From: Perkinsus chesapeaki ATCC PRA-425
Lineage: Eukaryota > Protista > Perkinsozoa
Length of the DNA stretch: 64,000 nt
Direction of reading: 5' to 3'
Assembly (NCBI GenBank): GCA_013115145.1
Contig: JAAPAO010000130.1
Location: 2,914 to 66,913, forward strand
Part shown: in pieces, positions 28,501-56,153 of the stretch
How positions within the stretch are numbered: position 1 is the first letter of the stretch
Layout: each line of letters starts with the position of its first letter
Position numbers and translations under genes: made by a program
Notes under the pieces: generated by a model
What the model saw: the letters and a program-made list of their open reading frames with translations, nothing else
Told to the model about the DNA's origin: nothing
The model's database searches: none

Positions 28501-29741
28501 GCTTTATCGCTCATAACGCTTAAACCAAATCAATTCTGACTTTGATAATCGCCGAAGGCAGGATATTCAGAAGATCAATTGATCGTCTAATTATTTCTGG
28601 GCTCAACATTTCAGACTTTGCCCATTCTGACATACTTTATATCTTCCATTGATCTCCTTTCTTCAACCTTATCCTCTCTGACCTGATTAACTCGCCGATT
28701 TTCTTGCGCGCCATCAAATTCCTACCTCCTCAGTATCTACGCTTCTCCTACCAACTAGGGACATTATATAACCGTCCACTGCAAACAGAAAATTTTCTGG
28801 AAAAAAACAGAAAAAATTTTTTTTCCACGCATATCTCCTAGCCTTGGAAGAAACCGCCCCAGACTTGAGCGAGAACCAGGACTGTTCGAGCGTCGGAACT
28901 TTGGAAACCAGTAGGAGAATACGGTATGCACCGTGCACCGCATACTGTTGACCAGATTTATCGAACCAAACACAGATCCAAAACCTCATGAAAAGACACC
29001 TTTGCTGAAATGGTAAGCGCTCGTGGGTGTCCGCTTAAATTGGTACACTGCCGGCCTACTCAGAAGTAAATCTAATCTGCTCCAAAGCATTGGAATGTAT
29101 ATAGATACCGACCATGAAAGTGCACCCAGTTGTGATACAGTACCTACTAGGACCCACCACTACATAGACTGATGCGAATGAAGGTCCAAAGTCCCATCAA
29201 AAAACAGATGCGTGAAAGTGGCTCACTCTACACAGCTTGCTCTGAACGTCAGTTACTTCGCCAAACCGTTGGAACATGCTTTGGTCCCCCCCAGTACTTT
29301 CACCACCAAATGCAATTCCGCTGCGTTTGCACACTTCCACTCTAACAGTAGATTTTATACGGCTAATCGATGAGGAAATTATAAACCTATTAGTGACAAG
29401 CTTATTTTCAGCGAACTCGTGATCGATAATAATTTCTGATCTCGCCGAATCTCCTGTAAGAGCTCCAAGCTCAAGCTCACCAGTCTTAAGAACTCCCTTG
29501 AAGAAGTGCTTTTGAGGTTCTTATAAACTAATTAGCAGTTGTCGGATACTCTTAAGCAACTGCTGCTCACTTTCATAACACTACCAGTTGGAGCTAATCA
29601 ATAATTAGACTCACAATATAACAGTGAGTCCCTAAAATACTCTCAGACATCAGAGAGCTATGAGAACTGTCAAAAGCAACACTTAATCAGCTTTAACAGG
29701 CAAACCTTGCCGCCACGTGGGCTGATAACAGATAGCTCCAT
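25600..29741 (-). CDS. Multi-exon hypothetical gene(s), largely helical/coiled-coil
   Basis: ATG at 29741 (MELSVISPRGGK|gtttg), then many GT-AG bounded exons, e.g. SEMLSPEIIRRSIDLLNILPSAIIK, EDADLTAEEVAANCAKALAALKGRRESERMEK|gtatt, KGEGRRRHTEEELDTMEYAIALATAAPEY, ATYSMGDNHEILFRDFKLEVAGNL. May be more than one gene. Confidence 0.5.
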
Positions 29742-29805
29742 TGATGTTGAGAATGACACTTAATAAAAATAATTGAATTATAAACAAACGAGTCTGTCTT
29801 CTTCA

Positions 29806-32800
29806 CTAAGGTTTATCTCCATTCAGCATTCGACTGTTGATGTCCTCAATCACCACTGGCAGGTCCTTTATAGTATCAATAACGTAATGAGCACCTGGCA
29901 CAGACTTCACTGTGTGAAACATTTCAATAGGCGAATAACAGAGAACATTCCATATACAAAAACAACAACCGACGAACCCATTGACTCTGTTAATGTAAAC
30001 ATTGAACCGGTAAGTAATAACTTCGCGAAATTCAGCACGAACTTTCCAAGACTTCTCAAAAACACATAAAAATTATCTTCCAGAAATACCTGTGTACTAA
30101 ACAAAAGATGCCGACTAAACGCATTGGTTAAGAAAATTGCACGCTCTTCAGTTTCCCCAAATTGATGAGGTTTTGGAAGAGAATGAGAACATATAACCAC
30201 TAAATGAACTAAAACTAATACATAGAGATATGAGCAAGAGAGAGTGACGAAGTAGGTATCAATTAATAACAGTAAAAGTGATCTTTATAACAGTACAGAG
30301 GTACTTCAACAGTGTCGAATGAACACAATGGGCTATGGTCTCACCAGAGGTATTGAGTTTCTCTCTCGAGATCTGAATACGTCTTTCCCTTTCAGACTGG
30401 GGCATTGTCTCCCATTGCTCTAGAGTGTCAATGTCTGTGTAATTACTGAGGCCAGCTACACCTGACAAAGACGAACCGCATGCCATCAGCCGTGCATGTA
30501 CACTTTTCGACGTAAAAATCAGGAAAAAAATCCTGAAATTCTCTCACAAAAGTTCCTTGCCGACACAGGAAAGCACAGGAACATTTGAAAAGTGCACTGT
30601 GTAGTCGCCTTACGAGAGGTTCCTCTACAGGCACACAACTTCTATCAAACTTCTTTCATTAGACTTACCAACACTCCAACAGCCAGCTGATAGACCCTCT
30701 CCCACACCACTAACTGTGTCATCCACTTTAACAACCTGAATGGCAGAATATCGTCGTGAGCATCACCAAATCGATTGGATGAGGAGACTGTAAACTGAGG
30801 GCAGTCAACGGAGACCCCAATATTGTCATATACGTTACTTATAGCCACGCGGAATGTGAGCCTCCATATCGCCGTTGACCCACCGATTCTATAGGGAAAA
30901 CGCCGAGGTTGCAGAGGTTCTGATAGATCATGAATGGCGCCGGCCTGAAGCCCATATTATTCGGCACCTACACACACGGGAATGTTCGACAACAATGCTC
31001 GTCGAATTTCATGGTGCTTCTCACCTCATCACCAGCAACACTGGAGTCGGGGATATAACCCTGTTCTTTGGCCTTCTCTAAAAGTATATCGACCATGACC
31101 TTTGTGAAACCGGTAGTGGAGCCTATCTGTAGATTATACCTGAAATATAGGAATATAATAAAGGAAGGTAATGAAGAAATATAATGAAGATTCTTCATTA
31201 AAGAAATGAATAATAGTAAATATAGGAAATAATAAAGAATCATTAAATGTATAATTAAGAAGAGATATAATAGAGTAACACAGAAGAGAAAGCTAGTAAC
31301 AGAGGTATATAAAGTAGACTAATTTAGTAGTCGTTAATGTTGGATATCGAGCAGAGTACAATAAAATGAAAGCACACAGGTATTGCTGAGCTGCCGCTTA
31401 CTTAGACTTTAATAATTTAACAGTATCAGCTGCACCATCAATTAGAGTTGAATACTTGGGCAAGACCTGATAACATAACACCTATTCAAATAACCATGGC
31501 TCAACGCGGGAAGTTGATGCGAGACTAGGTCGACGACCAAAGATGATGAAAGATAACACGTGGTCGGTGATGTGGGAATGAATTCCCATCACTCAAAAGC
31601 TTGGTTTCGAAATTTTCGAACAACAAGTTTTTTTCTCCGGAAATTTTTTAATTTTTTTTTAATTTTTCTTAGTTTTACCCAAATTTGATCGAAATTTCCC
31701 CGTTTTTCAGTCCGGCATGCTGCGATATCTACTTGCGTATAACTGATATCTTTCCTATCATCATCATCAGGTCTCCAAGAGCACACAAAAACTGTCCCCC
31801 TTACCGCGCACTGCATCGGAACAAAGTCCCTAAACATAGCCTCAACGTCACCGGCTGTCGAGGGACGTCCTTTAATTTTACGCCATCTTTCCTGGACTTC
31901 TGGAATCTCCAAAATCTTGGCGATGTGAAGGTCCTTGCGCAGACCTACATGGAGGGGATATGCCAACTACGCTCGTATATGTCATCCTATATTCGCCCAG
32001 AACTGTTAATTCGACAGGCAAGCTTTGAGTTCTGTGAACTCTCGCATTTTCACCGACTATCTCATTTCTCAATAAAGTGAGTTCGATCCGGCACGGAAAG
32101 GAGAATGGAAGATTCCCCGTCATTTAGCATCTCTGTCCCACTCGTTAACGTAATACAAGTTTCCATCAGTAAGTCAATGAAATTTTCTTCAATAACCAAT
32201 TTTATGTAGCAATATGAGCTTCCATATAGTAACTAATAGCATCTATCCCACTCAGCACGTTCTTATATTGATGAAATTATGAACGGAGTTATTATAAAAG
32301 TGTCACTCAATTATCTATCACATTAGAGTGCGACTCACAGATTGCCAAGATGCCAATGTGATAGACTAATTTCTGCTCGCACAGGTCGAGCAGAAATTAG
32401 TTTATCATATTCTCGCGCCAGCATACGACTGACGTGAAGGCCTTAGATGATGTATAATATTATGCCAGTCTAAGACGGTCCCTCACCCATCGGTAGGCGG
32501 GCCTCCTTCATCGATATCTCAACTCCAAACTTGCGGAAAACTTCAACAAAAACTACCGCGGGTGCCAGCACGTGGGCATCAGCAGTGGTACCAGACCAAT
32601 CCAGAATACATGCCTTTAGAGGACCTGAAAGGGGACAATCAATGCTGGGGACATACTTCGACTAAGTGCGGAGGAGCATCCTGGAATTGCCGAGCGGAGA
32701 GGTATGGAAATGTATGAATAACGAATAAGAAGATGCGAACTTAAACCTTTTGCTGAACCACAATCCGCCACTCCTTCGGCTATATTATGCTAGTGTAATG

Positions 32801-33369
32801 TAGGATAGAATTATACTAATGGTAATACAGTAATACTATAATAAAATGTTGAGTATTACTTTATACAGTATTACTTTATAACAGTATAATACAGTATTAC
32901 TTTATAACAGTATAATACAGTATTACTTTATAACANNNNNNNNNNNNNNNNNNNNNNNNNNNNNNNNNNNNNNNNNNNNNNNNNNNNNNNNNNNNNNNNN
33001 NNNNNNNNNNNNNNNNNNNNNNNNNNNNNNNNNTTACTTTATAACAGTATAATACAGTATTACTTTATAACAGTATAATACAGTATTACTTTATAACAGT
33101 ATAATACATTATTACTCTATTATATATCAATATGACTGCATCAAAACTAATTAGTATCATCTGTTATAGCTTAGTCTATTATATAAAGTATTAAAATTAA
33201 GATATGAACATGAAGAGATGTAAATCTTACCTTTATAGGGTTCACGATTAGGCACATGCTTCACTACACCAGGCGCGAGGTTCACAGTCGCCATAGCTCT
33301 CGTGGAGCATTTCAGCCACAGACCACCAGCGAGCTTAGATTTACCGAAGGAAAGATTCCTGGCAAGCAT
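29806..33369 (-). CDS. phnX: Phosphonoacetaldehyde hydrolase (phosphonatase), HAD superfamily, 9 exons, 317 aa
   Basis: Exons 33369-33231, 32624-32487, 31944-31805, 31466-31402, 31139-31025, 30967-30884, 30735-30669, 30461-30345 and 29894-29806 join in frame at GT-AG sites (954 nt). Motifs: KGPLKACILDWSGTT (nucleophile Asp), EARLPMGLRKDLH (Schiff-base Lys), IGSTTGF, GDEV...RPAPFM, VVKVDDT..G..EG..AGCW, GAHYVIDTIKDLP. Confidence 0.95.
32355..32411. repeat. ~25-bp stem, 7-nt loop hairpin inside phnX intron 2
   Basis: tgatagactaatttctgctcg-cacaggt-cgagcagaaattagtttatca; the inner 15 bp are perfect, with G-T pairs further out. Confidence 0.95.
32853..33108. repeat. 26-bp AT-rich minisatellite in phnX intron 1, interrupted by an assembly gap
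   Basis: Unit cagtattactttataacagtataata is repeated on both sides of the N run. Confidence 0.95.
32936..33033. other. Assembly gap (98 N)
   Basis: Run of N characters flanked by the same tandem repeat. Confidence 1.
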
Positions 33370-33444
33370 TGGAGGACGAATCAACCTCTGAAGAATCTTA
33401 AGGAGACACATGTCAACGCAATGCCCGCAATGCTTCGACACCCA

Positions 33445-34724
33445 TCATGATTTCACAAGGTAATCACAAAGTCTGTCAACCCTCAAACTGCCACCGTCAG
33501 AGTCCTGAGCCACATCAAGGAGCTCGGCTATCTCATCCTGAGATGAAACAAATGAGCGGTATGAACGAGTAGAGCTGACAAGCGCACCTCGGAAAAGGCG
33601 GGTAGGCCGGCAGTGCCCTTAGCACGATTCAGCAAGTAATCGAGGCACTCCCTGGAGATAGTGTCATCGCCGCTCATGAGGGGGTTCAGCAATTCTGAGA
33701 GCGTGGAGGAGAGAGCGGTATGATGACGCAAATAGTGTAGGGTAAACGCTATTCATCATATTGATAGTCAAAGCTGGCTGACCATCGGAATCAGACACGA
33801 GTACATATACCAAGGATTTCGTTCAATCTTCGCCTCCTCGATGTTGAAGGTCATGCCAAGAAACTAAAGATATTCCCGAAGGCAAGATGTCCGAACTTCA
33901 AGTTTAACTAGTCACCATCGGCCCCCCTTCATTCGACACAATTCTGCACGCATGCGCAGATATCCCGCCGCAGGCATGGCGCGACTTACTCTTAAAAGCC
34001 TCTCGATCGACATTCCTCTCCCTACACACCGCCACTGCCGAGGAGAACACTATAATATTAGGCTGCGAGCCAAACTCAATCAGGATCTCATTTGTGAACT
34101 CCTCGTCACTGACAAGATTCACTTCAATTTTACAAATGCTTTATACGCCGGCACACGGGGAAAACCGCGCGCCACAAATTTCCACGACGGAATGACATCG
34201 GACGGACACTAGTGGTAATAATAAACTGTATAGCTACACTAAGGCATAGTAGTGTATAGCCACAGTAGGCTATGTGAGAGCGCTCATGAAAAGTCTCCAT
34301 AAGATTTGCCAAGTTAACCTTTCGACAGCTTCCCAGCACAATTCTGGCGTACCCTGATATCTCTGTGCTGGAATAACAACGATGAAATTTGGGGCTTACC
34401 ACTGAGGCGCACCAAATGGTCTACAATGCCTTCTCGACCCTACAGCTCCGCCTGCTCGAAAACTCGAAATGAGTACGAGGTGAAGTGATACAGAATTTCA
34501 GAAGCCGACAAGACTCACGTAATCTGCGCTCCACACACCCTCAACGCCTCCCGGAACTCCTCCGGTGTCAGACGGCCATCAGCATCTGAATTTGAGGAAA
34601 GAGCGGTATGAGCAGTCACGTACGAATTACCAGAATCAAATATATAAAAGACTTCTCTTTCGTCAACACCGCTGTTGATGGCGAGCGAGGAGCGCGAAGG
34701 ACTCTCGTGGAGCGGCTCCTCCAT
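33445..34724 (-). CDS. Calmodulin/myosin-light-chain-like EF-hand protein, 5 exons, 159 aa
   Basis: Exons 34724-34631, 34585-34519, 34108-33990, 33694-33588 and 33537-33445 join in frame (480 nt). Canonical EF loop DSDADGRLTPEE followed by ALRVCGAQITDEEF; the later EF positions are degenerate. Confidence 0.85.
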
Positions 34725-43742: not shown

Positions 43743-45344
43743 ATGGCTACTTCCAATCTTCGGCAAGAAGGCCAAAATCGTCCACTTGCCTCAGATGTGC
43801 TGCTCGAGCTCATCGAACCTAGTGAGGAGGGTGCGGATGGGTCTCCGAATGCCTGTGATGACGAACTCCAATGGCAAGAGTTGCTGAAGTATCTTCCTAC
43901 TACCGAGGTGCCACTGTTCTTGGCGCAGCATTTCCAGACGCTGACGACCGAAGCGCCGGTGCCGGCAGCAGCAGCTCCCAAGGTAACGGAGGAGACAAAG
44001 CCTGTGTTGGCTCGGAAGGCCTCGGATAAGTCTGCGGGGTCGGCGGAGAGCAGCAACGCGGAAGACGGTATAATCAAGCCGCATAAGCAAGCTCCGCTGG
44101 TGACGCCTCCTCTGGCGGAAGCTGCTGCTCCGACGGTGGCAGCTAGCGGACAGGTAGTGGGGAAAGGAAAGAAGAAACGCGGCCAGCAGCAGCGGGAGAA
44201 CACAAAGGAAGGGATGAAGAGCGAGCTACAAGGGTTGTGGCAGCACGCGAAAACTATCTATGATGTAAAAGGACATATATTGCAGTTGGCAACGGACCAG
44301 TGGGGGTGCCGGTTTGTGCAGTTGAGATTGGACTCGACAGATGCAGGAGAGGCCAATTCGGTTGTGTCGGAGCTTCTGGAACATATCACTGATCTGTCCA
44401 CGGATAGCTATGGCAACTATGTCGTACAGAAAATGATAGAAACCAGCGTCGATGACGAATCGAGATTAAGCCTGGTGGTGGAGCAGCTCGTAGGGGAGGT
44501 ATTCCGGCTGTCGGTGCATGTCTACGGCTGCCGAGTGATACAGAGAGCGATCGCGGCGACCTGCAAGGCTCTGCCCCAGCAGCACGCGTTGCTTGTCAGC
44601 GAGTTGAAGGGGAGAATACAGGAATGTGTGGAAGATGCTCATGGCAATCATGTGATACAAAAAATAATAGAAGTCGAGCGACCGGTGCAGAAGTTGCAGT
44701 TTATAGTGGATGCATTGACGCCCTCAGCGAGTTGGCTGGCGGCTCACTCCTGCGGGTGTCGGGTCATCCAAAGGTTACTGGAGACGTGCCCGGCAGATAT
44801 GGTCACTACTATGCGGACTTCGATTGTTCGATCTTGCGAGGAGCTCAGTACTAACTCCTTTGGCAACTATGTTATTCAGCATGTCATCGTATACGGCACG
44901 CCGAGAGATCGGAAGGCAATCTACGAGTATGTTATGGAGGACTTCGCCGCGGCGTCATGCCACAAGTTCTCGACAAATGTGGTTGATAAATGTCTGCAAC
45001 ATTTGACCATGTCGGAGCTGGCTCATGTGATTTCGGTTGTGCTCGGTGATGCAGGGGATGAAGCTGCGTCGATCGCGGCGTGGGGCGGCAGCGCTGGAGA
45101 GGCGGCGACTTTGCTGGTTATGCTCCGGGACCGGTATGGTTGTGCAATTGTCTCCCGGCTGTTGGAGCTGGCGCCTAGTGAGATGATCGAGAGGAGCAGA
45201 CTGGTGTGGAAGTTGAAGGAGCAGCTACCGGTGTTGAGGAAATCGTCCTTCGCCAAGCATCTCGTAGCAGCGATTGAGTCCACACATGCTGGGTCGGTGC
45301 CACCGGCAATCGGTCAATTTTCAAGACAGTTGCCAGCTCACTAG
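43743..45344 (+). CDS. Pumilio/PUF RNA-binding protein, intronless, 533 aa
   Basis: Eight PUF repeats with cores WGCRFVQ, YGNYVVQ, YGCRVIQ, HGNHVIQ, CGCRVIQ, FGNYVIQ, FSTNVVD and YGCAIVS after a low-complexity N-terminus. Confidence 0.96.
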   Translation: MATSNLRQEGQNRPLASDVLLELIEPSEEGADGSPNACDDELQWQELLKYLPTTEVPLFLAQHFQTLTTEAPVPAAAAPKVTEETKPVLARKASDKSAGSAESSNAEDGIIKPHKQAPLVTPPLAEAAAPTVAASGQVVGKGKKKRGQQQRENTKEGMKSELQGLWQHAKTIYDVKGHILQLATDQWGCRFVQLRLDSTDAGEANSVVSELLEHITDLSTDSYGNYVVQKMIETSVDDESRLSLVVEQLVGEVFRLSVHVYGCRVIQRAIAATCKALPQQHALLVSELKGRIQECVEDAHGNHVIQKIIEVERPVQKLQFIVDALTPSASWLAAHSCGCRVIQRLLETCPADMVTTMRTSIVRSCEELSTNSFGNYVIQHVIVYGTPRDRKAIYEYVMEDFAAASCHKFSTNVVDKCLQHLTMSELAHVISVVLGDAGDEAASIAAWGGSAGEAATLLVMLRDRYGCAIVSRLLELAPSEMIERSRLVWKLKEQLPVLRKSSFAKHLVAAIESTHAGSVPPAIGQFSRQLPAH

Positions 45345-48103: not shown

Positions 48104-48373
48104 CTGCGGAGCTACAGTGGTTCACTGCATCATGGTTAGAGTAATTTCATTTGACATTGGCAATAGTTGGATGATTTAGTGGGCACATCGGGAGAATGTA
48201 CCTACGTGCGTGGACGCTTTGGGAATCTAAGCATCGGCTTTTTCTTTGGCAAATCTCTCCCATCAATACATATTGATATAGCTAGGGCCACCAAGCATGG
48301 CCTAAATTATCATGTGGTAGAAGTAGCGTTCATGTGGTACGTTCGCCCTCCCCCACTGCAGTTGTCCTTGGTA

Positions 48374-49348
48374 ATGCCAAACACGGTCAGCGGACTACTT
48401 GCCTTACTGCTTGCCTTCGTATCCGGACAGAAGCACCGTGAATCGCAGATTCTCTACGGCAAGGGTAGAGACTCGCACTACATACTCATTCCAGATCCGC
48501 GCAGTTGGCCGCAGGGCGTCATTAAGCACTTGAATGATCTCGATCTTATTCACTCTCGAACTGTCGTCAACGGTGTGAAGGTCTTCCACATGAATCCTTA
48601 TATAATCGACGCTAAGAACAACACAGAGCCCGCTACCAAAGCCTCGGTGATCAGAGTCAACTCAGACGGCCTGACTGAAATGCTGAGTTCTGATGTCGAT
48701 AAAAAAGGCCGGGAGTGCTTTACCGACGTGATTGGCTCAACTCCGGCTGTAGCCGTTACAGCTTATGGTCACGGTGTGCTTCACATGCGCCCTTCGACAG
48801 ATATCAGCAGAGTCGAGCATGATCTATCCTCCTGTGATGATGGCTTTAAGGTACTCATCCCGCGTGGAGGAGATCAATTCCCTATAATTGGCACATACGT
48901 CGGCGTAAATAAGGACAATTTTGCTCTGAGGTTGAAGTTGACAAGAGACCATGCTCCCGAGTTTGCTCTTCGCCAATGTGTCGATGGTCAGCTAGGTGAA
49001 CTGCAGAGAATCATTTATCACCAGATGTGCAACTTTCTTCTGGCATCTGTGGTCTTCAAGAAGGGTGGTACGTCCCAGTTCTTCCATGCTGTGCTGACCC
49101 CTATCACTTCACCATTAGGCGCAGAGTTCACTAACCCTCCTAGCTGTTTTGGCTTCATAAAAAGGTCCAAGAATATAGAACCGTTCCCCGCATCTCCCAA
49201 CTGTCATGGTCACTATTACAGCGACTTTTACGGGTTCACTAAATCTAATATCAAAATGTGGGACGGCACCGTAGGTATCGGTTATACGGTTAGACAGCGC
49301 GGAGTTCCAAGAAGGTTTGGCCTGTTCGACAGACAGGACACAATTTGA
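48374..49348 (+). CDS. Intronless secreted protein of unknown function
   Basis: Long ORF (48167-49348). ATG at 48374 gives MPNTVSGLLALLLAFVSG (signal-peptide-like). No domain recognised. Confidence 0.75.
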   Translation: MPNTVSGLLALLLAFVSGQKHRESQILYGKGRDSHYILIPDPRSWPQGVIKHLNDLDLIHSRTVVNGVKVFHMNPYIIDAKNNTEPATKASVIRVNSDGLTEMLSSDVDKKGRECFTDVIGSTPAVAVTAYGHGVLHMRPSTDISRVEHDLSSCDDGFKVLIPRGGDQFPIIGTYVGVNKDNFALRLKLTRDHAPEFALRQCVDGQLGELQRIIYHQMCNFLLASVVFKKGGTSQFFHAVLTPITSPLGAEFTNPPSCFGFIKRSKNIEPFPASPNCHGHYYSDFYGFTKSNIKMWDGTVGIGYTVRQRGVPRRFGLFDRQDTI

Positions 49349-54033: not shown

Positions 54034-56153
54034 CTATCGTACTAGAACCCTTCGGCCCCTTATTCCGGATCTTCTCGATGGTTGTTCCCATTTTTCTGGA
54101 CCTCTTACCACTGCCGGAGCTCTCACACTGTGTACCTTTTTCACCGTGGTCTCCTCGACCCTCACTGCTGTTCCATTTCCCTTCACATAAAGGCTGTCAT
54201 CAGAAGGGCGTTTTTCCGTTGACCAAGAAGTGCTTCCTCGCACTGGCAGCAAGTGCTCTTCAATGAGCGAGGGTTCGTCAAGAGCCTCTAGGCTTCCGCG
54301 TGTAGAAGGGATGCTACTTTCGGCCATGTACTGAGATACCCTTTCGCTGTCGACCGATACCTGCCCACCGAGGCAATGGCTGCCAACGGAAGCTGCCGCA
54401 AGGCCCTTGGATAGTTGTGATGGCAAGTGCTGAGCTCTTAATGTGTGCGACCGCTCCTCCTCGAGTTTGTGGATGAAAGACTCACTAAGCTCGCCGTACA
54501 AGCTTAGCTGGTGTACCGGTACGGTGCTGAGACACCGCTTGGCTTCCGTTTGCCTCCAGGGACAGGTGGGTCTCAACCCAATTCCACCGAATGATTCTTT
54601 TCTACTATTAACAAGCCTTCTTGACCATTGCGGTTTACTGGGGAGCACCTTCCCCTTATTATTGTTCACACCAGATCGGCAGCTGGATGTCGATTCGCTC
54701 AGTCTCAGCACGGATGAAGCTAAGATACTCATCCCGGAACGCGAAGAGCTTCTCGATTCGTGTTCGAAGATAAGTTCTGTGACGTCAGACTTTGAAGTAG
54801 ATCTTGAGAGCGCCATGTTTTCTCCAGGAGCATCTTGGGCTTGAGCATGCTCTGTAGGCGGAATACAACAGTTTGTCGGTGAATGATGAGGCGCCTCGTC
54901 CATTTCAACTTCATCAAACCTGCGGCCTCCCATAACCATATTTTCATCTTCTAACGTATCGCTCTTCACAAGGGTCTCTTCACTGGCAAACGTATCGCTC
55001 TTCACAAGGGTCTCTTCATTGACAAACGTATCGCTCTTCACAAGGGTCTCTTCATTGACAAACGTATCGCTCTTCACAAGGGTCTCTTTATTGACAAACG
55101 TATCGCTCTTCACAAGGGTATCTTCACTGTCAAACGTATGGGTTTTCATGAACATATTTTCACTCTCTAACTCCTCGCTTTCCGCCAAAATGTCTCGCTT
55201 TTTAAATCCGGCATCCTCCAGGAGCGTCTCTTCATCCTTGGGTATTTTTTCACTAAGGTTCTGCGTCAAGTAGAGCGATTCACTGCTAGCATGTATCTTC
55301 GAGCCTAGCGTCCGCACAACGGGCTCTGTCTTTGACTTCTTTGTTTCACTCTCATCTTTCCTGGTAGGCGGAAATAGTATTTTTACCTGAGACGTGGCAA
55401 ACTTTCTATTCGCTTCGCCCATCTGCCCACCTTGGCGAAGCTCTCTGTGAGCTCCTTTGCTGCTGAGTTCCGAATTGCTGAGTGTTGGGCTAACGCGCGT
55501 TCAAAAGCTCCTTTGTTTAAGTATTGTTTCTCATCGTTAATGCCAATAGTGGATTCCACTTCCATCTCCTCCAGTCTCTCCAGTCCCCCTTTGCAGCCCT
55601 CCAATAGCCACCGGACGGCTTCCATCGCTCTCGCGCCTTTTGCTTGATAATCGCGTATTTCCGTCCACCGCATTTTAACCGCTTTCATGTACCCTAAATC
55701 GACTTCCGAATACACCCGGTAGAATTCCTCGGCCGTTTGGTTCACATTTTTCACGGTTTGCTTCGCAGTCTTCTCAATAGCGCTTTGTATCTCGCTTTGC
55801 TCCATTCGACAATCCTTGCACACAGCGCGTTCTCGCTGCCACTCGAGCTCCTGGCCAAGTCTGTCGCGCAGCTGCTGCGTGCTACACATGGCCAAAGCGT
55901 CCGCAGTTTCCTTGGAGCTTTCTAGAAGTGGTGACAGTATCTCGGCTGCAGCGCTCACTAAATAAGCGTTGGAGAGCGGGGCGCATTTTGTGGTGTTCAA
56001 GGCTCGAAGGATCTCCCTGGTCACTCTTGTGTTAAATTCATCTTTCGTTACGTTATTGTCATCCCAATCGTAAACCTTCTTCTTCGCGCTAACATGTTCC
56101 TCAATGAGATCTCCCTCTATAAGGCGAGCCATGACAGCAGCAGAGACATGCAA
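54034..56153 (-). CDS. Hypothetical protein with a coiled-coil N-terminal half and a repeat/low-complexity C-terminal half; 2 exons
   Basis: ORFs 55383-56153 and 54034-55422 are joined in frame by a 44-nt GT-AG intron (gtgggcag...tctcag): ...TESFAK|VKILFPP.... Confidence 0.75.
54953..55140. repeat. Coding 36-bp tandem repeat (five copies plus a partial), peptide VKSDTFVNEETL
   Basis: Units start at 54953, 54989, 55025, 55061 and 55097. Confidence 0.95.

Follow-up and report, generated by a model that had tools for sequence, protein, structure and literature searches.

The presence of a phosphonoacetaldehyde hydrolase (PhnX) gene in a protist that infects bivalves raises the question of what this gene encodes, where it came from and which phosphonates it would serve to break down. 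The gene in question lies on the minus strand of a 64,000-nucleotide stretch of the genome of Perkinsus chesapeaki ATCC PRA-425 (contig JAAPAO010000130.1, positions 2,914 to 66,913), hereafter referred to as the window. A preliminary description of this DNA had portrayed it as a mainly bacterial enzyme, horizontally acquired by a probable mollusc parasite and domesticated to exploit the phosphonolipids of the host. The organism is such a parasite, while the origin proposed for the gene did not withstand comparison with its relatives: the Perkinsus PhnX is a mis-annotated new addition to a eukaryotic PhnX group that was known before, and neither a bacterium nor the mollusc host is supported as the source of a lineage-specific acquisition by Perkinsus. 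Taken as a whole, the data are best explained, and in our judgement with good confidence, by a nuclear P. chesapeaki PhnX that belongs to a variant-subtype lineage of eukaryotes and giant viruses, that is probably mitochondrial and that is older than the split from Perkinsus olseni.

The gene runs from 33369 to 29806 and comprises nine exons and eight introns in a model that was rebuilt from three-frame translations of the minus strand together with exact donor and acceptor sites (Table 1). All eight introns are of the GT...AG type and measure, from first to last, 606 (a nominal value, as this intron bears an assembly gap), 542, 338, 262, 57, 148, 207 and 450 nt; the GC content is 48% in exons and 37% in introns, and a search for tRNA-derived introns in the gene returned none. 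A T-rich low-complexity tract is found in intron 3 (approximately 31620-31680). The 954-nt coding sequence specifies 317 amino acids, so that the complete, eight-intron gene announced in the preliminary description was borne out, and the motifs quoted there (DWSGT, MGLRKDLH and KVDDT) are all found in the rebuilt protein.

In public databases this gene is concealed within a faulty model. It corresponds, with 100% identity at the protein level, to residues 163-479 of GenBank entry FOL47_001318 (504 aa, 'hypothetical protein'; 'EF-hand domain-containing protein' in UniRef), a chimera (29686-34724, minus strand) in which an upstream EF-hand gene (approximately 34724-33400) has been fused in frame to PhnX, and which reads through the RNA-defined 5' untranslated region (UTR) of PhnX and overruns the family-typical stop codon by 25 residues. 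The P. olseni orthologue FOZ63_025702 (312 aa, 87% identical), on the other hand, is annotated on its own and bears the UniRef name phosphonoacetaldehyde hydrolase. When the exons of this orthologue were mapped, all eight intron positions and phases matched those of P. chesapeaki, although the introns are far longer in the latter (57-606 nt, 2610 nt in sum including the gap) than in P. olseni (44-148 nt, 492 nt in sum; L013:2161-3591). The EF-hand gene is the upstream neighbour of PhnX in both species, at a distance of 80 nt in P. olseni. Since both species share them, the gene, its introns and its neighbour are older than the divergence of P. chesapeaki and P. olseni.

Transcription of the locus was assessed by placing Logan contigs from three small RNA runs, belonging to two studies, on the genomic sequence. 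Introns 1 to 7 were confirmed to the base by spliced contigs, with no mismatch in 1.6 kb aligned. One contig from an RNA library (run X3) reaches position 33389, 20 nt upstream of the ATG, and continues with 19 non-genomic letters whose reverse complement, CCGTAGCCATTTTGGCTCA, we take to be the 22-nt spliced leader that dinoflagellates and Perkinsus use, lacking only the first base and the terminal AG. The genome shows an AG at the junction (33389-33388), with a pyrimidine tract just upstream, and this arrangement, together with the non-genomic leader, places trans-splicing of the PhnX mRNA 18 nt before the start codon. Thus, the PhnX gene is transcribed, its introns are spliced in cis (seven of them as seen in RNA) and its mRNA receives a spliced leader. 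The start of PhnX lies very near the end of the upstream EF-hand gene (33370-33420 of the window; L013:2080-2161 in P. olseni), and this proximity, along with resolution by a spliced leader, is compatible with polycistron-like transcription of the pair. Contamination by bacterial DNA, which the introns had been taken to rule out, is excluded by splicing and trans-splicing in RNA and by the conservation of intron positions and neighbour in P. olseni.

The gap in the assembly does not affect the reading of the gene. The middle of intron 1 is occupied, on both sides of the gap, by a 26-nt tandem repeat with the unit TTACTTTATAACAGTATAATACAGTA (32863-32935 and 33034-33120), and the position of the gap within this array accounts for the assembly break. 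In a spliced RNA contig from run X3, position 33229 is followed immediately by 32622 and the sequence runs on into exon 3; because this contig bridges the gap-bearing intron, exons 1 and 2 stand on one transcript and in frame, and the length of the gap is irrelevant to the coding sequence. The P. olseni intron at this position is only 47 nt long.

The identity of the encoded enzyme as PhnX, a member of the HAD superfamily, is well supported by profile, alignment and structural-model comparisons, from which the enzymatic step is predicted. The whole protein scores 281 bits against the NCBIfam equivalog TIGR01422 (cut-off 220) over profile positions 2-251 of 251, and even single exon pieces match this profile, while a phmmer search of the Protein Data Bank (PDB) retrieved the Bacillus cereus PhnX structures at an E-value of 1e-57. 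The AlphaFold (AF2) model has a predicted local distance difference test (pLDDT) score of 85 and displays a HAD Rossmann core with a helical cap domain; its best Foldseek matches are 1rql (TMt 0.92, root-mean-square deviation 2.0) and 3iru, at 1e-23 as against 1e-10 for the next HAD protein other than PhnX. In comparison with the B. cereus enzyme (PDB 1FEZ, 1RQL and 2IOF), to which it is 39% identical, D55, T59, M92, G93, K96, H99, T170, R207 and D233 correspond to D12, T16, M49, G50, K53, H56, T126, R160 and D186; the catalytic Asp and the Schiff-base Lys recognized in the preliminary description are accordingly Asp55 and Lys96. Lys96, His99, Met92 and Gly93, which are specific to PhnX rather than general to HAD proteins, are invariant in 111 of 111 rows of the clade to which the protein belongs. 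The differences from the B. cereus system, apart from the active-site replacements described below, comprise a loop that is three residues longer before Arg160, about 30 additional N-terminal residues, the introns and the trans-spliced mRNA.

Five positions differ between the Perkinsus protein and B. cereus PhnX (A14S, C22V, Y128F, G185D and D190G), so that Val65, Phe172 and Gly237 stand at Cys22, Tyr128 and Asp190, with Asp232 adjoining, and motif IV reads DD...G instead of GD...D. This signature defines a 'variant' subtype, which includes all eukaryotic and viral relatives and many bacterial ones, being the same in every bacterial relative examined, whereas a 'classic' subtype, represented by Azospirillum and B. 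cereus, has the other residues at these positions. Variant-subtype bacterial genes occur in operons for 2-aminoethylphosphonate (AEP) degradation, composed of an ABC transporter, a LysR regulator, a class-V aminotransferase (PhnW), PhnX and a class-III aminotransferase, and a PhnW-like gene was present within the 4-kb flanks of 54 of 80 bacterial loci. Because operon-encoded bacterial PhnX proteins have the same replacements, the signature can be read as a mark of the subtype rather than of a loss of function, and it is, as judged from these sequences, compatible with PhnX activity. Bacterial members in phnW-phnX operons (for example that of a Kiloniellales metagenome-assembled genome (MAG), P0302, L011/L012) agree with the Perkinsus protein at 14 of 14 scored active-site positions and are 57-62% identical to it; they differ in having neither the 2-residue insertion described below nor the N-terminal extension, in lying beside PhnW, LysR and ABC transporter genes and in forming a separate, tight clade that spans several phyla.

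Relatives were searched for with the P. chesapeaki protein (FOL47_001318 residues 163-479) as query. A phmmer search of a representative library with a 45-aa piece of exon 2 had returned mostly fragments and led on to full-length relatives and, in turn, to the annotated P. chesapeaki protein, and a search for which the exon pieces had been aligned to an Azospirillum scaffold, with several pieces scattered by MAFFT, had found only Azospirillum-like bacterial PhnX; the top match of the representative search, P0121 (2040 aa), was dismissed as a low-complexity artefact. The best matches outside Perkinsus are 63-73% identical, 290-330 aa long and mostly encoded on metatranscriptome contigs of about 1 kb. 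Those best matches that carry a name are all eukaryotes, with identities to the Perkinsus protein of 68% for Ciona intestinalis, 63% for Styela clava, 62% for Reticulomyxa filosa and 63% for Plasmodiophora brassicae; the Ciona and Styela clava entries are named 'phosphonoacetaldehyde hydrolase-like'. EukProt contributed Bolivina and Rosalina (Foraminifera) and Astrolonche (Acantharea), and PhnX was also found in cnidarian-rich Atlas clusters, besides Rhizaria and tunicates. Bacterial relatives are 53-62% identical and come from 385 of 185,579 GTDB species genomes, distributed over many phyla. The view that PhnX is mainly bacterial is inapplicable to this subtype, in which the Perkinsus protein nests with tunicates, Foraminifera, Radiolaria, Plasmodiophora and giant viruses.

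Three trees were computed, namely a FastTree phylogeny of 175 rows, an IQ-TREE phylogeny of 85 rows under LG+C20 and one of 121 rows under LG+G4 with named bacterial genomes. In all three, the variant subtype constitutes one group (support 100), and all bacteria fall into one tight crown clade (99-100); this crown is nested in a larger clade (93-97) whose other members are the mussel Sinanodonta, animal-like proteins and some unlabelled proteins with long extensions. Perkinsus lies outside this bacteria-containing clade in each of them, among tunicate, rhizarian, viral and metatranscriptome sequences, and the phylogeny that had been proposed as a check on the bacterial origin thus places it neither inside the bacterial clade nor sister to it. 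The eukaryote and virus set is also backed by an independent character, a 2-residue insertion (xNN[ML]GF before RPxP): 101 of its 102 scorable rows have it, as against none of 55 other rows and none of 77 matches from bacterial genomes, and a pattern search for this signature in 185,579 prokaryotic species genomes matched no PhnX. Since classic-subtype outgroups have the short form, the insertion is derived. The eukaryotic PhnX proteins already on record (P. olseni, Ciona, Styela clava, Reticulomyxa, Plasmodiophora, and foraminiferan and acantharian transcripts) share with the P. chesapeaki protein the clade, the insertion and an identity of 62-87%. None of the eight Perkinsus intron positions coincides with any of the six of Ciona; identical positions would have pointed to common eukaryotic descent, whereas their absence carries no information either way. 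As regards the bacterial crown itself, its branches are short and it unites Alpha- and Gammaproteobacteria, Acidobacteria, Planctomycetota, Verrucomicrobia, SAR324 and Flavobacteriales, nested among the mussel and animal-like sequences; this pattern suggests recent and rampant transfer among bacteria, while transfer between bacteria and eukaryotes may have gone in either direction.

The mechanism that can be envisaged on these grounds starts from a nuclear gene whose product would hydrolyse phosphonoacetaldehyde to acetaldehyde and phosphate through a Schiff base on Lys96 of the cap domain and phosphoryl transfer to Asp55 of motif I. Compared with bacterial PhnX, the Perkinsus protein has about 30 extra N-terminal residues; its first 35 residues contain five Arg or Lys and no Asp or Glu, and disorder is predicted for residues 1-30, where pLDDT falls below 50. 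Basic extensions of like length and composition occur in the protist members of the clade, those of tunicates being shorter, and the stretch preceding the DW motif has a median length of 37 residues, compared with 19 in bacteria. Such a basic, acid-free and disordered extension may direct the enzyme to the mitochondrion, as may the similar ones of its protist relatives. The enzyme would take the step that follows an AEP:pyruvate aminotransferase, whose gene would lie elsewhere in the genome, and the phosphate would be released from AEP supplied either by the phosphonolipids of the parasite itself or by engulfed host material.

Several observations weigh against this explanation and have to be set beside the evidence for it. 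Intron 8, exon 9 and the stop codon lie outside the RNA cover and are placed by homology, the same junction being present in P. olseni and the C-terminus being family-typical, as in bacterial PhnX. The five replacements relative to B. cereus PhnX depart from the characterised enzyme, and no enzyme assay of any variant-subtype member was found in the literature. Concerning the lineage, two trees recover the eukaryote and virus set as a clade (85-92) and the C20 mixture model leaves it as an unresolved basal grade, and most rows of this clade carry no organism label, named eukaryotes numbering nine and viral or virus-like contigs six. The approximately unbiased (AU) test, which itself speaks for the explanation in that it rejects the grouping of the two Perkinsus sequences with the bacterial crown (log-likelihood difference 105, p 0.0018), carries the reservation that the group was named after the tree was seen. 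The 64-kb window contains no PhnW or class-III aminotransferase, no transporter and no phosphonate-synthesis gene, and it is from composition and predicted disorder only that the N-terminal extension is suggested to be a mitochondrial presequence.

Among the alternatives, the one that retains most weight, although it is clearly less probable than the explanation preferred here, accepts the same enzyme and assigns to it as main role the salvage of host-derived AEP during infection instead of internal turnover; the functional part of the preliminary proposal is thereby retained and the horizontal transfer dropped. Bivalves and other molluscs are rich in phosphonolipid in the form of ceramide-AEP, our literature search returned papers on AEP in oysters and other molluscs, and the enzyme is intact, expressed and kept in two Perkinsus species that infect clams and oysters; use of host ceramide-AEP is possible. 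On the other hand, neither a transporter nor a ceramide-AEP phosphodiesterase nor PhnW has been identified, and free-living relatives have the same gene. The occurrence of this enzyme lineage in free-living protists and tunicates implies that the presence of PhnX is not an adaptation to mollusc parasitism, contrary to what had been proposed. Published work on dinoflagellates, the sister lineage of Perkinsozoa, also bears on this point: the PhnW-PhnX pathway described there (Cui et al. 2016, Front Mar Sci 2:120), which by its published description contains the same enzyme, is reported not to serve the uptake or use of phosphonates from outside, the role proposed for it being intracellular phosphonate turnover. 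The dinoflagellate literature favours internal recycling.

A wider scenario connects the enzyme to giant viruses. The contigs that encode several of the relatives are AT-rich (23% GC) and densely packed with genes, among them giant-virus markers (MutS7-type MutS, Pox_A22 resolvase and DUF5767), and a scan of IMG/VR yielded five viral contigs with PhnX, including three published giant-virus MAGs (GVMAGs). The PhnX proteins of the IMG/VR and metagenome contigs are 60-72% identical to the Perkinsus protein and most have the eukaryote-type insertion. Neither PhnW nor a class-III aminotransferase was found beside PhnX at the loci of the viruses, Ciona and P. olseni, and the literature search returned no paper on PhnX in Nucleocytoviricota. 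It could be imagined that a distinct eukaryote and giant-virus PhnX lineage, which the insertion marks throughout and a mitochondrial presequence marks in protists, has passed between protists, tunicates and Nucleocytoviricota, that transfers may have gone in both directions, given the nesting of the bacterial crown among animal-type sequences, and that the Perkinsus enzyme is the last step in feeding on clam ceramide-aminoethylphosphonate; in this full form the proposal appears improbable.

Less probable still is that the protein is a PhnX-like HAD hydrolase acting on another substrate, either a different phosphonate or a phosphate ester. This idea draws on the active-site replacements (C22V, Y128F, A14S and D190G/G185D), on the lack of assayed variant-subtype members in the literature and on the lack of a nearby PhnW in eukaryotic and viral loci, but the same signature is found in bacterial genes of AEP operons that include PhnW and an AEP-type ABC transporter, the PhnX-specific residues equivalent to Lys53, His56, Met49 and Gly50 do not vary within the clade, and the score exceeds the equivalog cut-off.

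The account given in the preliminary description, according to which a (proteo)bacterium supplied the PhnX of the Perkinsus lineage, where it was provided with introns and domesticated as a specific adaptation for mining host ceramide-AEP, is very unlikely: the KVDDT-type active site is common to a large, mostly proteobacterial clade of 53-62% identity, the eukaryotic distribution of PhnX is patchy and the expressed gene resides in a pathogen of phosphonolipid-rich bivalves, yet the closer relatives (63-73%) are from tunicates, free-living Rhizaria, giant viruses and metatranscriptomes, they share a derived insertion that was not found in bacterial matches, and the topology test speaks against a union with the bacterial crown. 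Nor is the gene absent from related eukaryotes, as expected under such a transfer, since it is present in Rhizaria and tunicates and a PhnW-PhnX pair has been reported in dinoflagellates; an ancient transfer from a bacterium to a eukaryote at the base of the clade is possible, yet it would not constitute an adaptation of the parasite. The mollusc host was likewise rejected as donor. The PhnX of the mussel Sinanodonta woodiana (P0333) has the variant active-site signature and passes TIGR01422, but it groups with the other clade and does not have the insertion, so that the host lineage is not the source and the PhnX lineages of parasite and host are distinct. A 'PhnX-like' protein of Biomphalaria has been detected in a hemocyte proteome (PMC6281880), and for coral PhnX the origin put forward in the literature is a transfer out of Symbiodiniaceae (PMC4878875; bioRxiv 10.64898/2026.05.06.723128).

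Table 1. Positions in the window of the parts of the P. chesapeaki PhnX gene and of associated features.
Feature	Position	Strand	Basis
Trans-splice AG acceptor	33388..33389	-	contig end and genomic pyrimidine tract/AG
PhnX 5' UTR, 18 nt	33387-33370	-	mRNA body start at 33387
Exon 1: ATG and N-terminal extension	33231..33369	-	model; RNA junction to exon 2
Assembly gap (N run) within intron 1 (33230-32625)	32936..33033	.	26-nt tandem repeat on both sides
Exon 2: HAD motif I DWSGT, nucleophile Asp55 (codon 32601-32599)	32487..32624	-	model; TIGR01422 E 4.6e-13 for the exon alone
Exon 3: cap-domain segment, Schiff-base Lys96 (codon 31936-31934), His99	31805..31944	-	model, profile match, alignment
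Exon 4	31402..31466	-	model and RNA
Exon 5: HAD motif II GSTTGF; Thr170, Phe172 replacing Tyr128	31025..31139	-	model, profile match, RNA
Exon 6: clade-specific insertion VPNNMGF, then Arg207 (= Arg160)	30884..30967	-	model, RNA, alignment
Exon 7: HAD motif IV variant KVDDTVSG; Asp232, Asp233, Gly replacing Asp190	30669..30735	-	model, profile match, RNA
Exon 8	30345..30461	-	model; RNA reaches 30406 only
Exon 9 and stop codon TAG (29808-29806)	29806..29894	-	model; homology, without RNA cover

Elsewhere in the window, an uninterrupted open reading frame (ORF) of 533 aa on the plus strand (43743-45344) matches Pfam PF00806 (E 1e-48) and specifies an RNA-binding protein of the Pumilio (PUF) family, and the long ORFs at 48167-49348, 54034-55422 and 55383-56153 had no Pfam match.

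Phosphonate catabolism in eukaryotes has been described as poorly understood (review PMC10574752), and our literature search found no paper that ties Perkinsus to it. In this regard, the present analysis shows that a bivalve pathogen possesses an expressed gene for a predicted C-P bond hydrolase, it corrects a database error by which the P. chesapeaki PhnX was hidden in an EF-hand fusion labelled hypothetical, and it does away with an attractive account, a gene transfer specific to the parasite, that the data do not support. The finding that giant viruses carry the same PhnX lineage may merit a study of its own. Perkinsus can be cultured and transfected, and it could serve as a practical system in which to distinguish whether eukaryotic PhnW-PhnX is used for the internal recycling of phosphonolipids or for the harvest of external ones.

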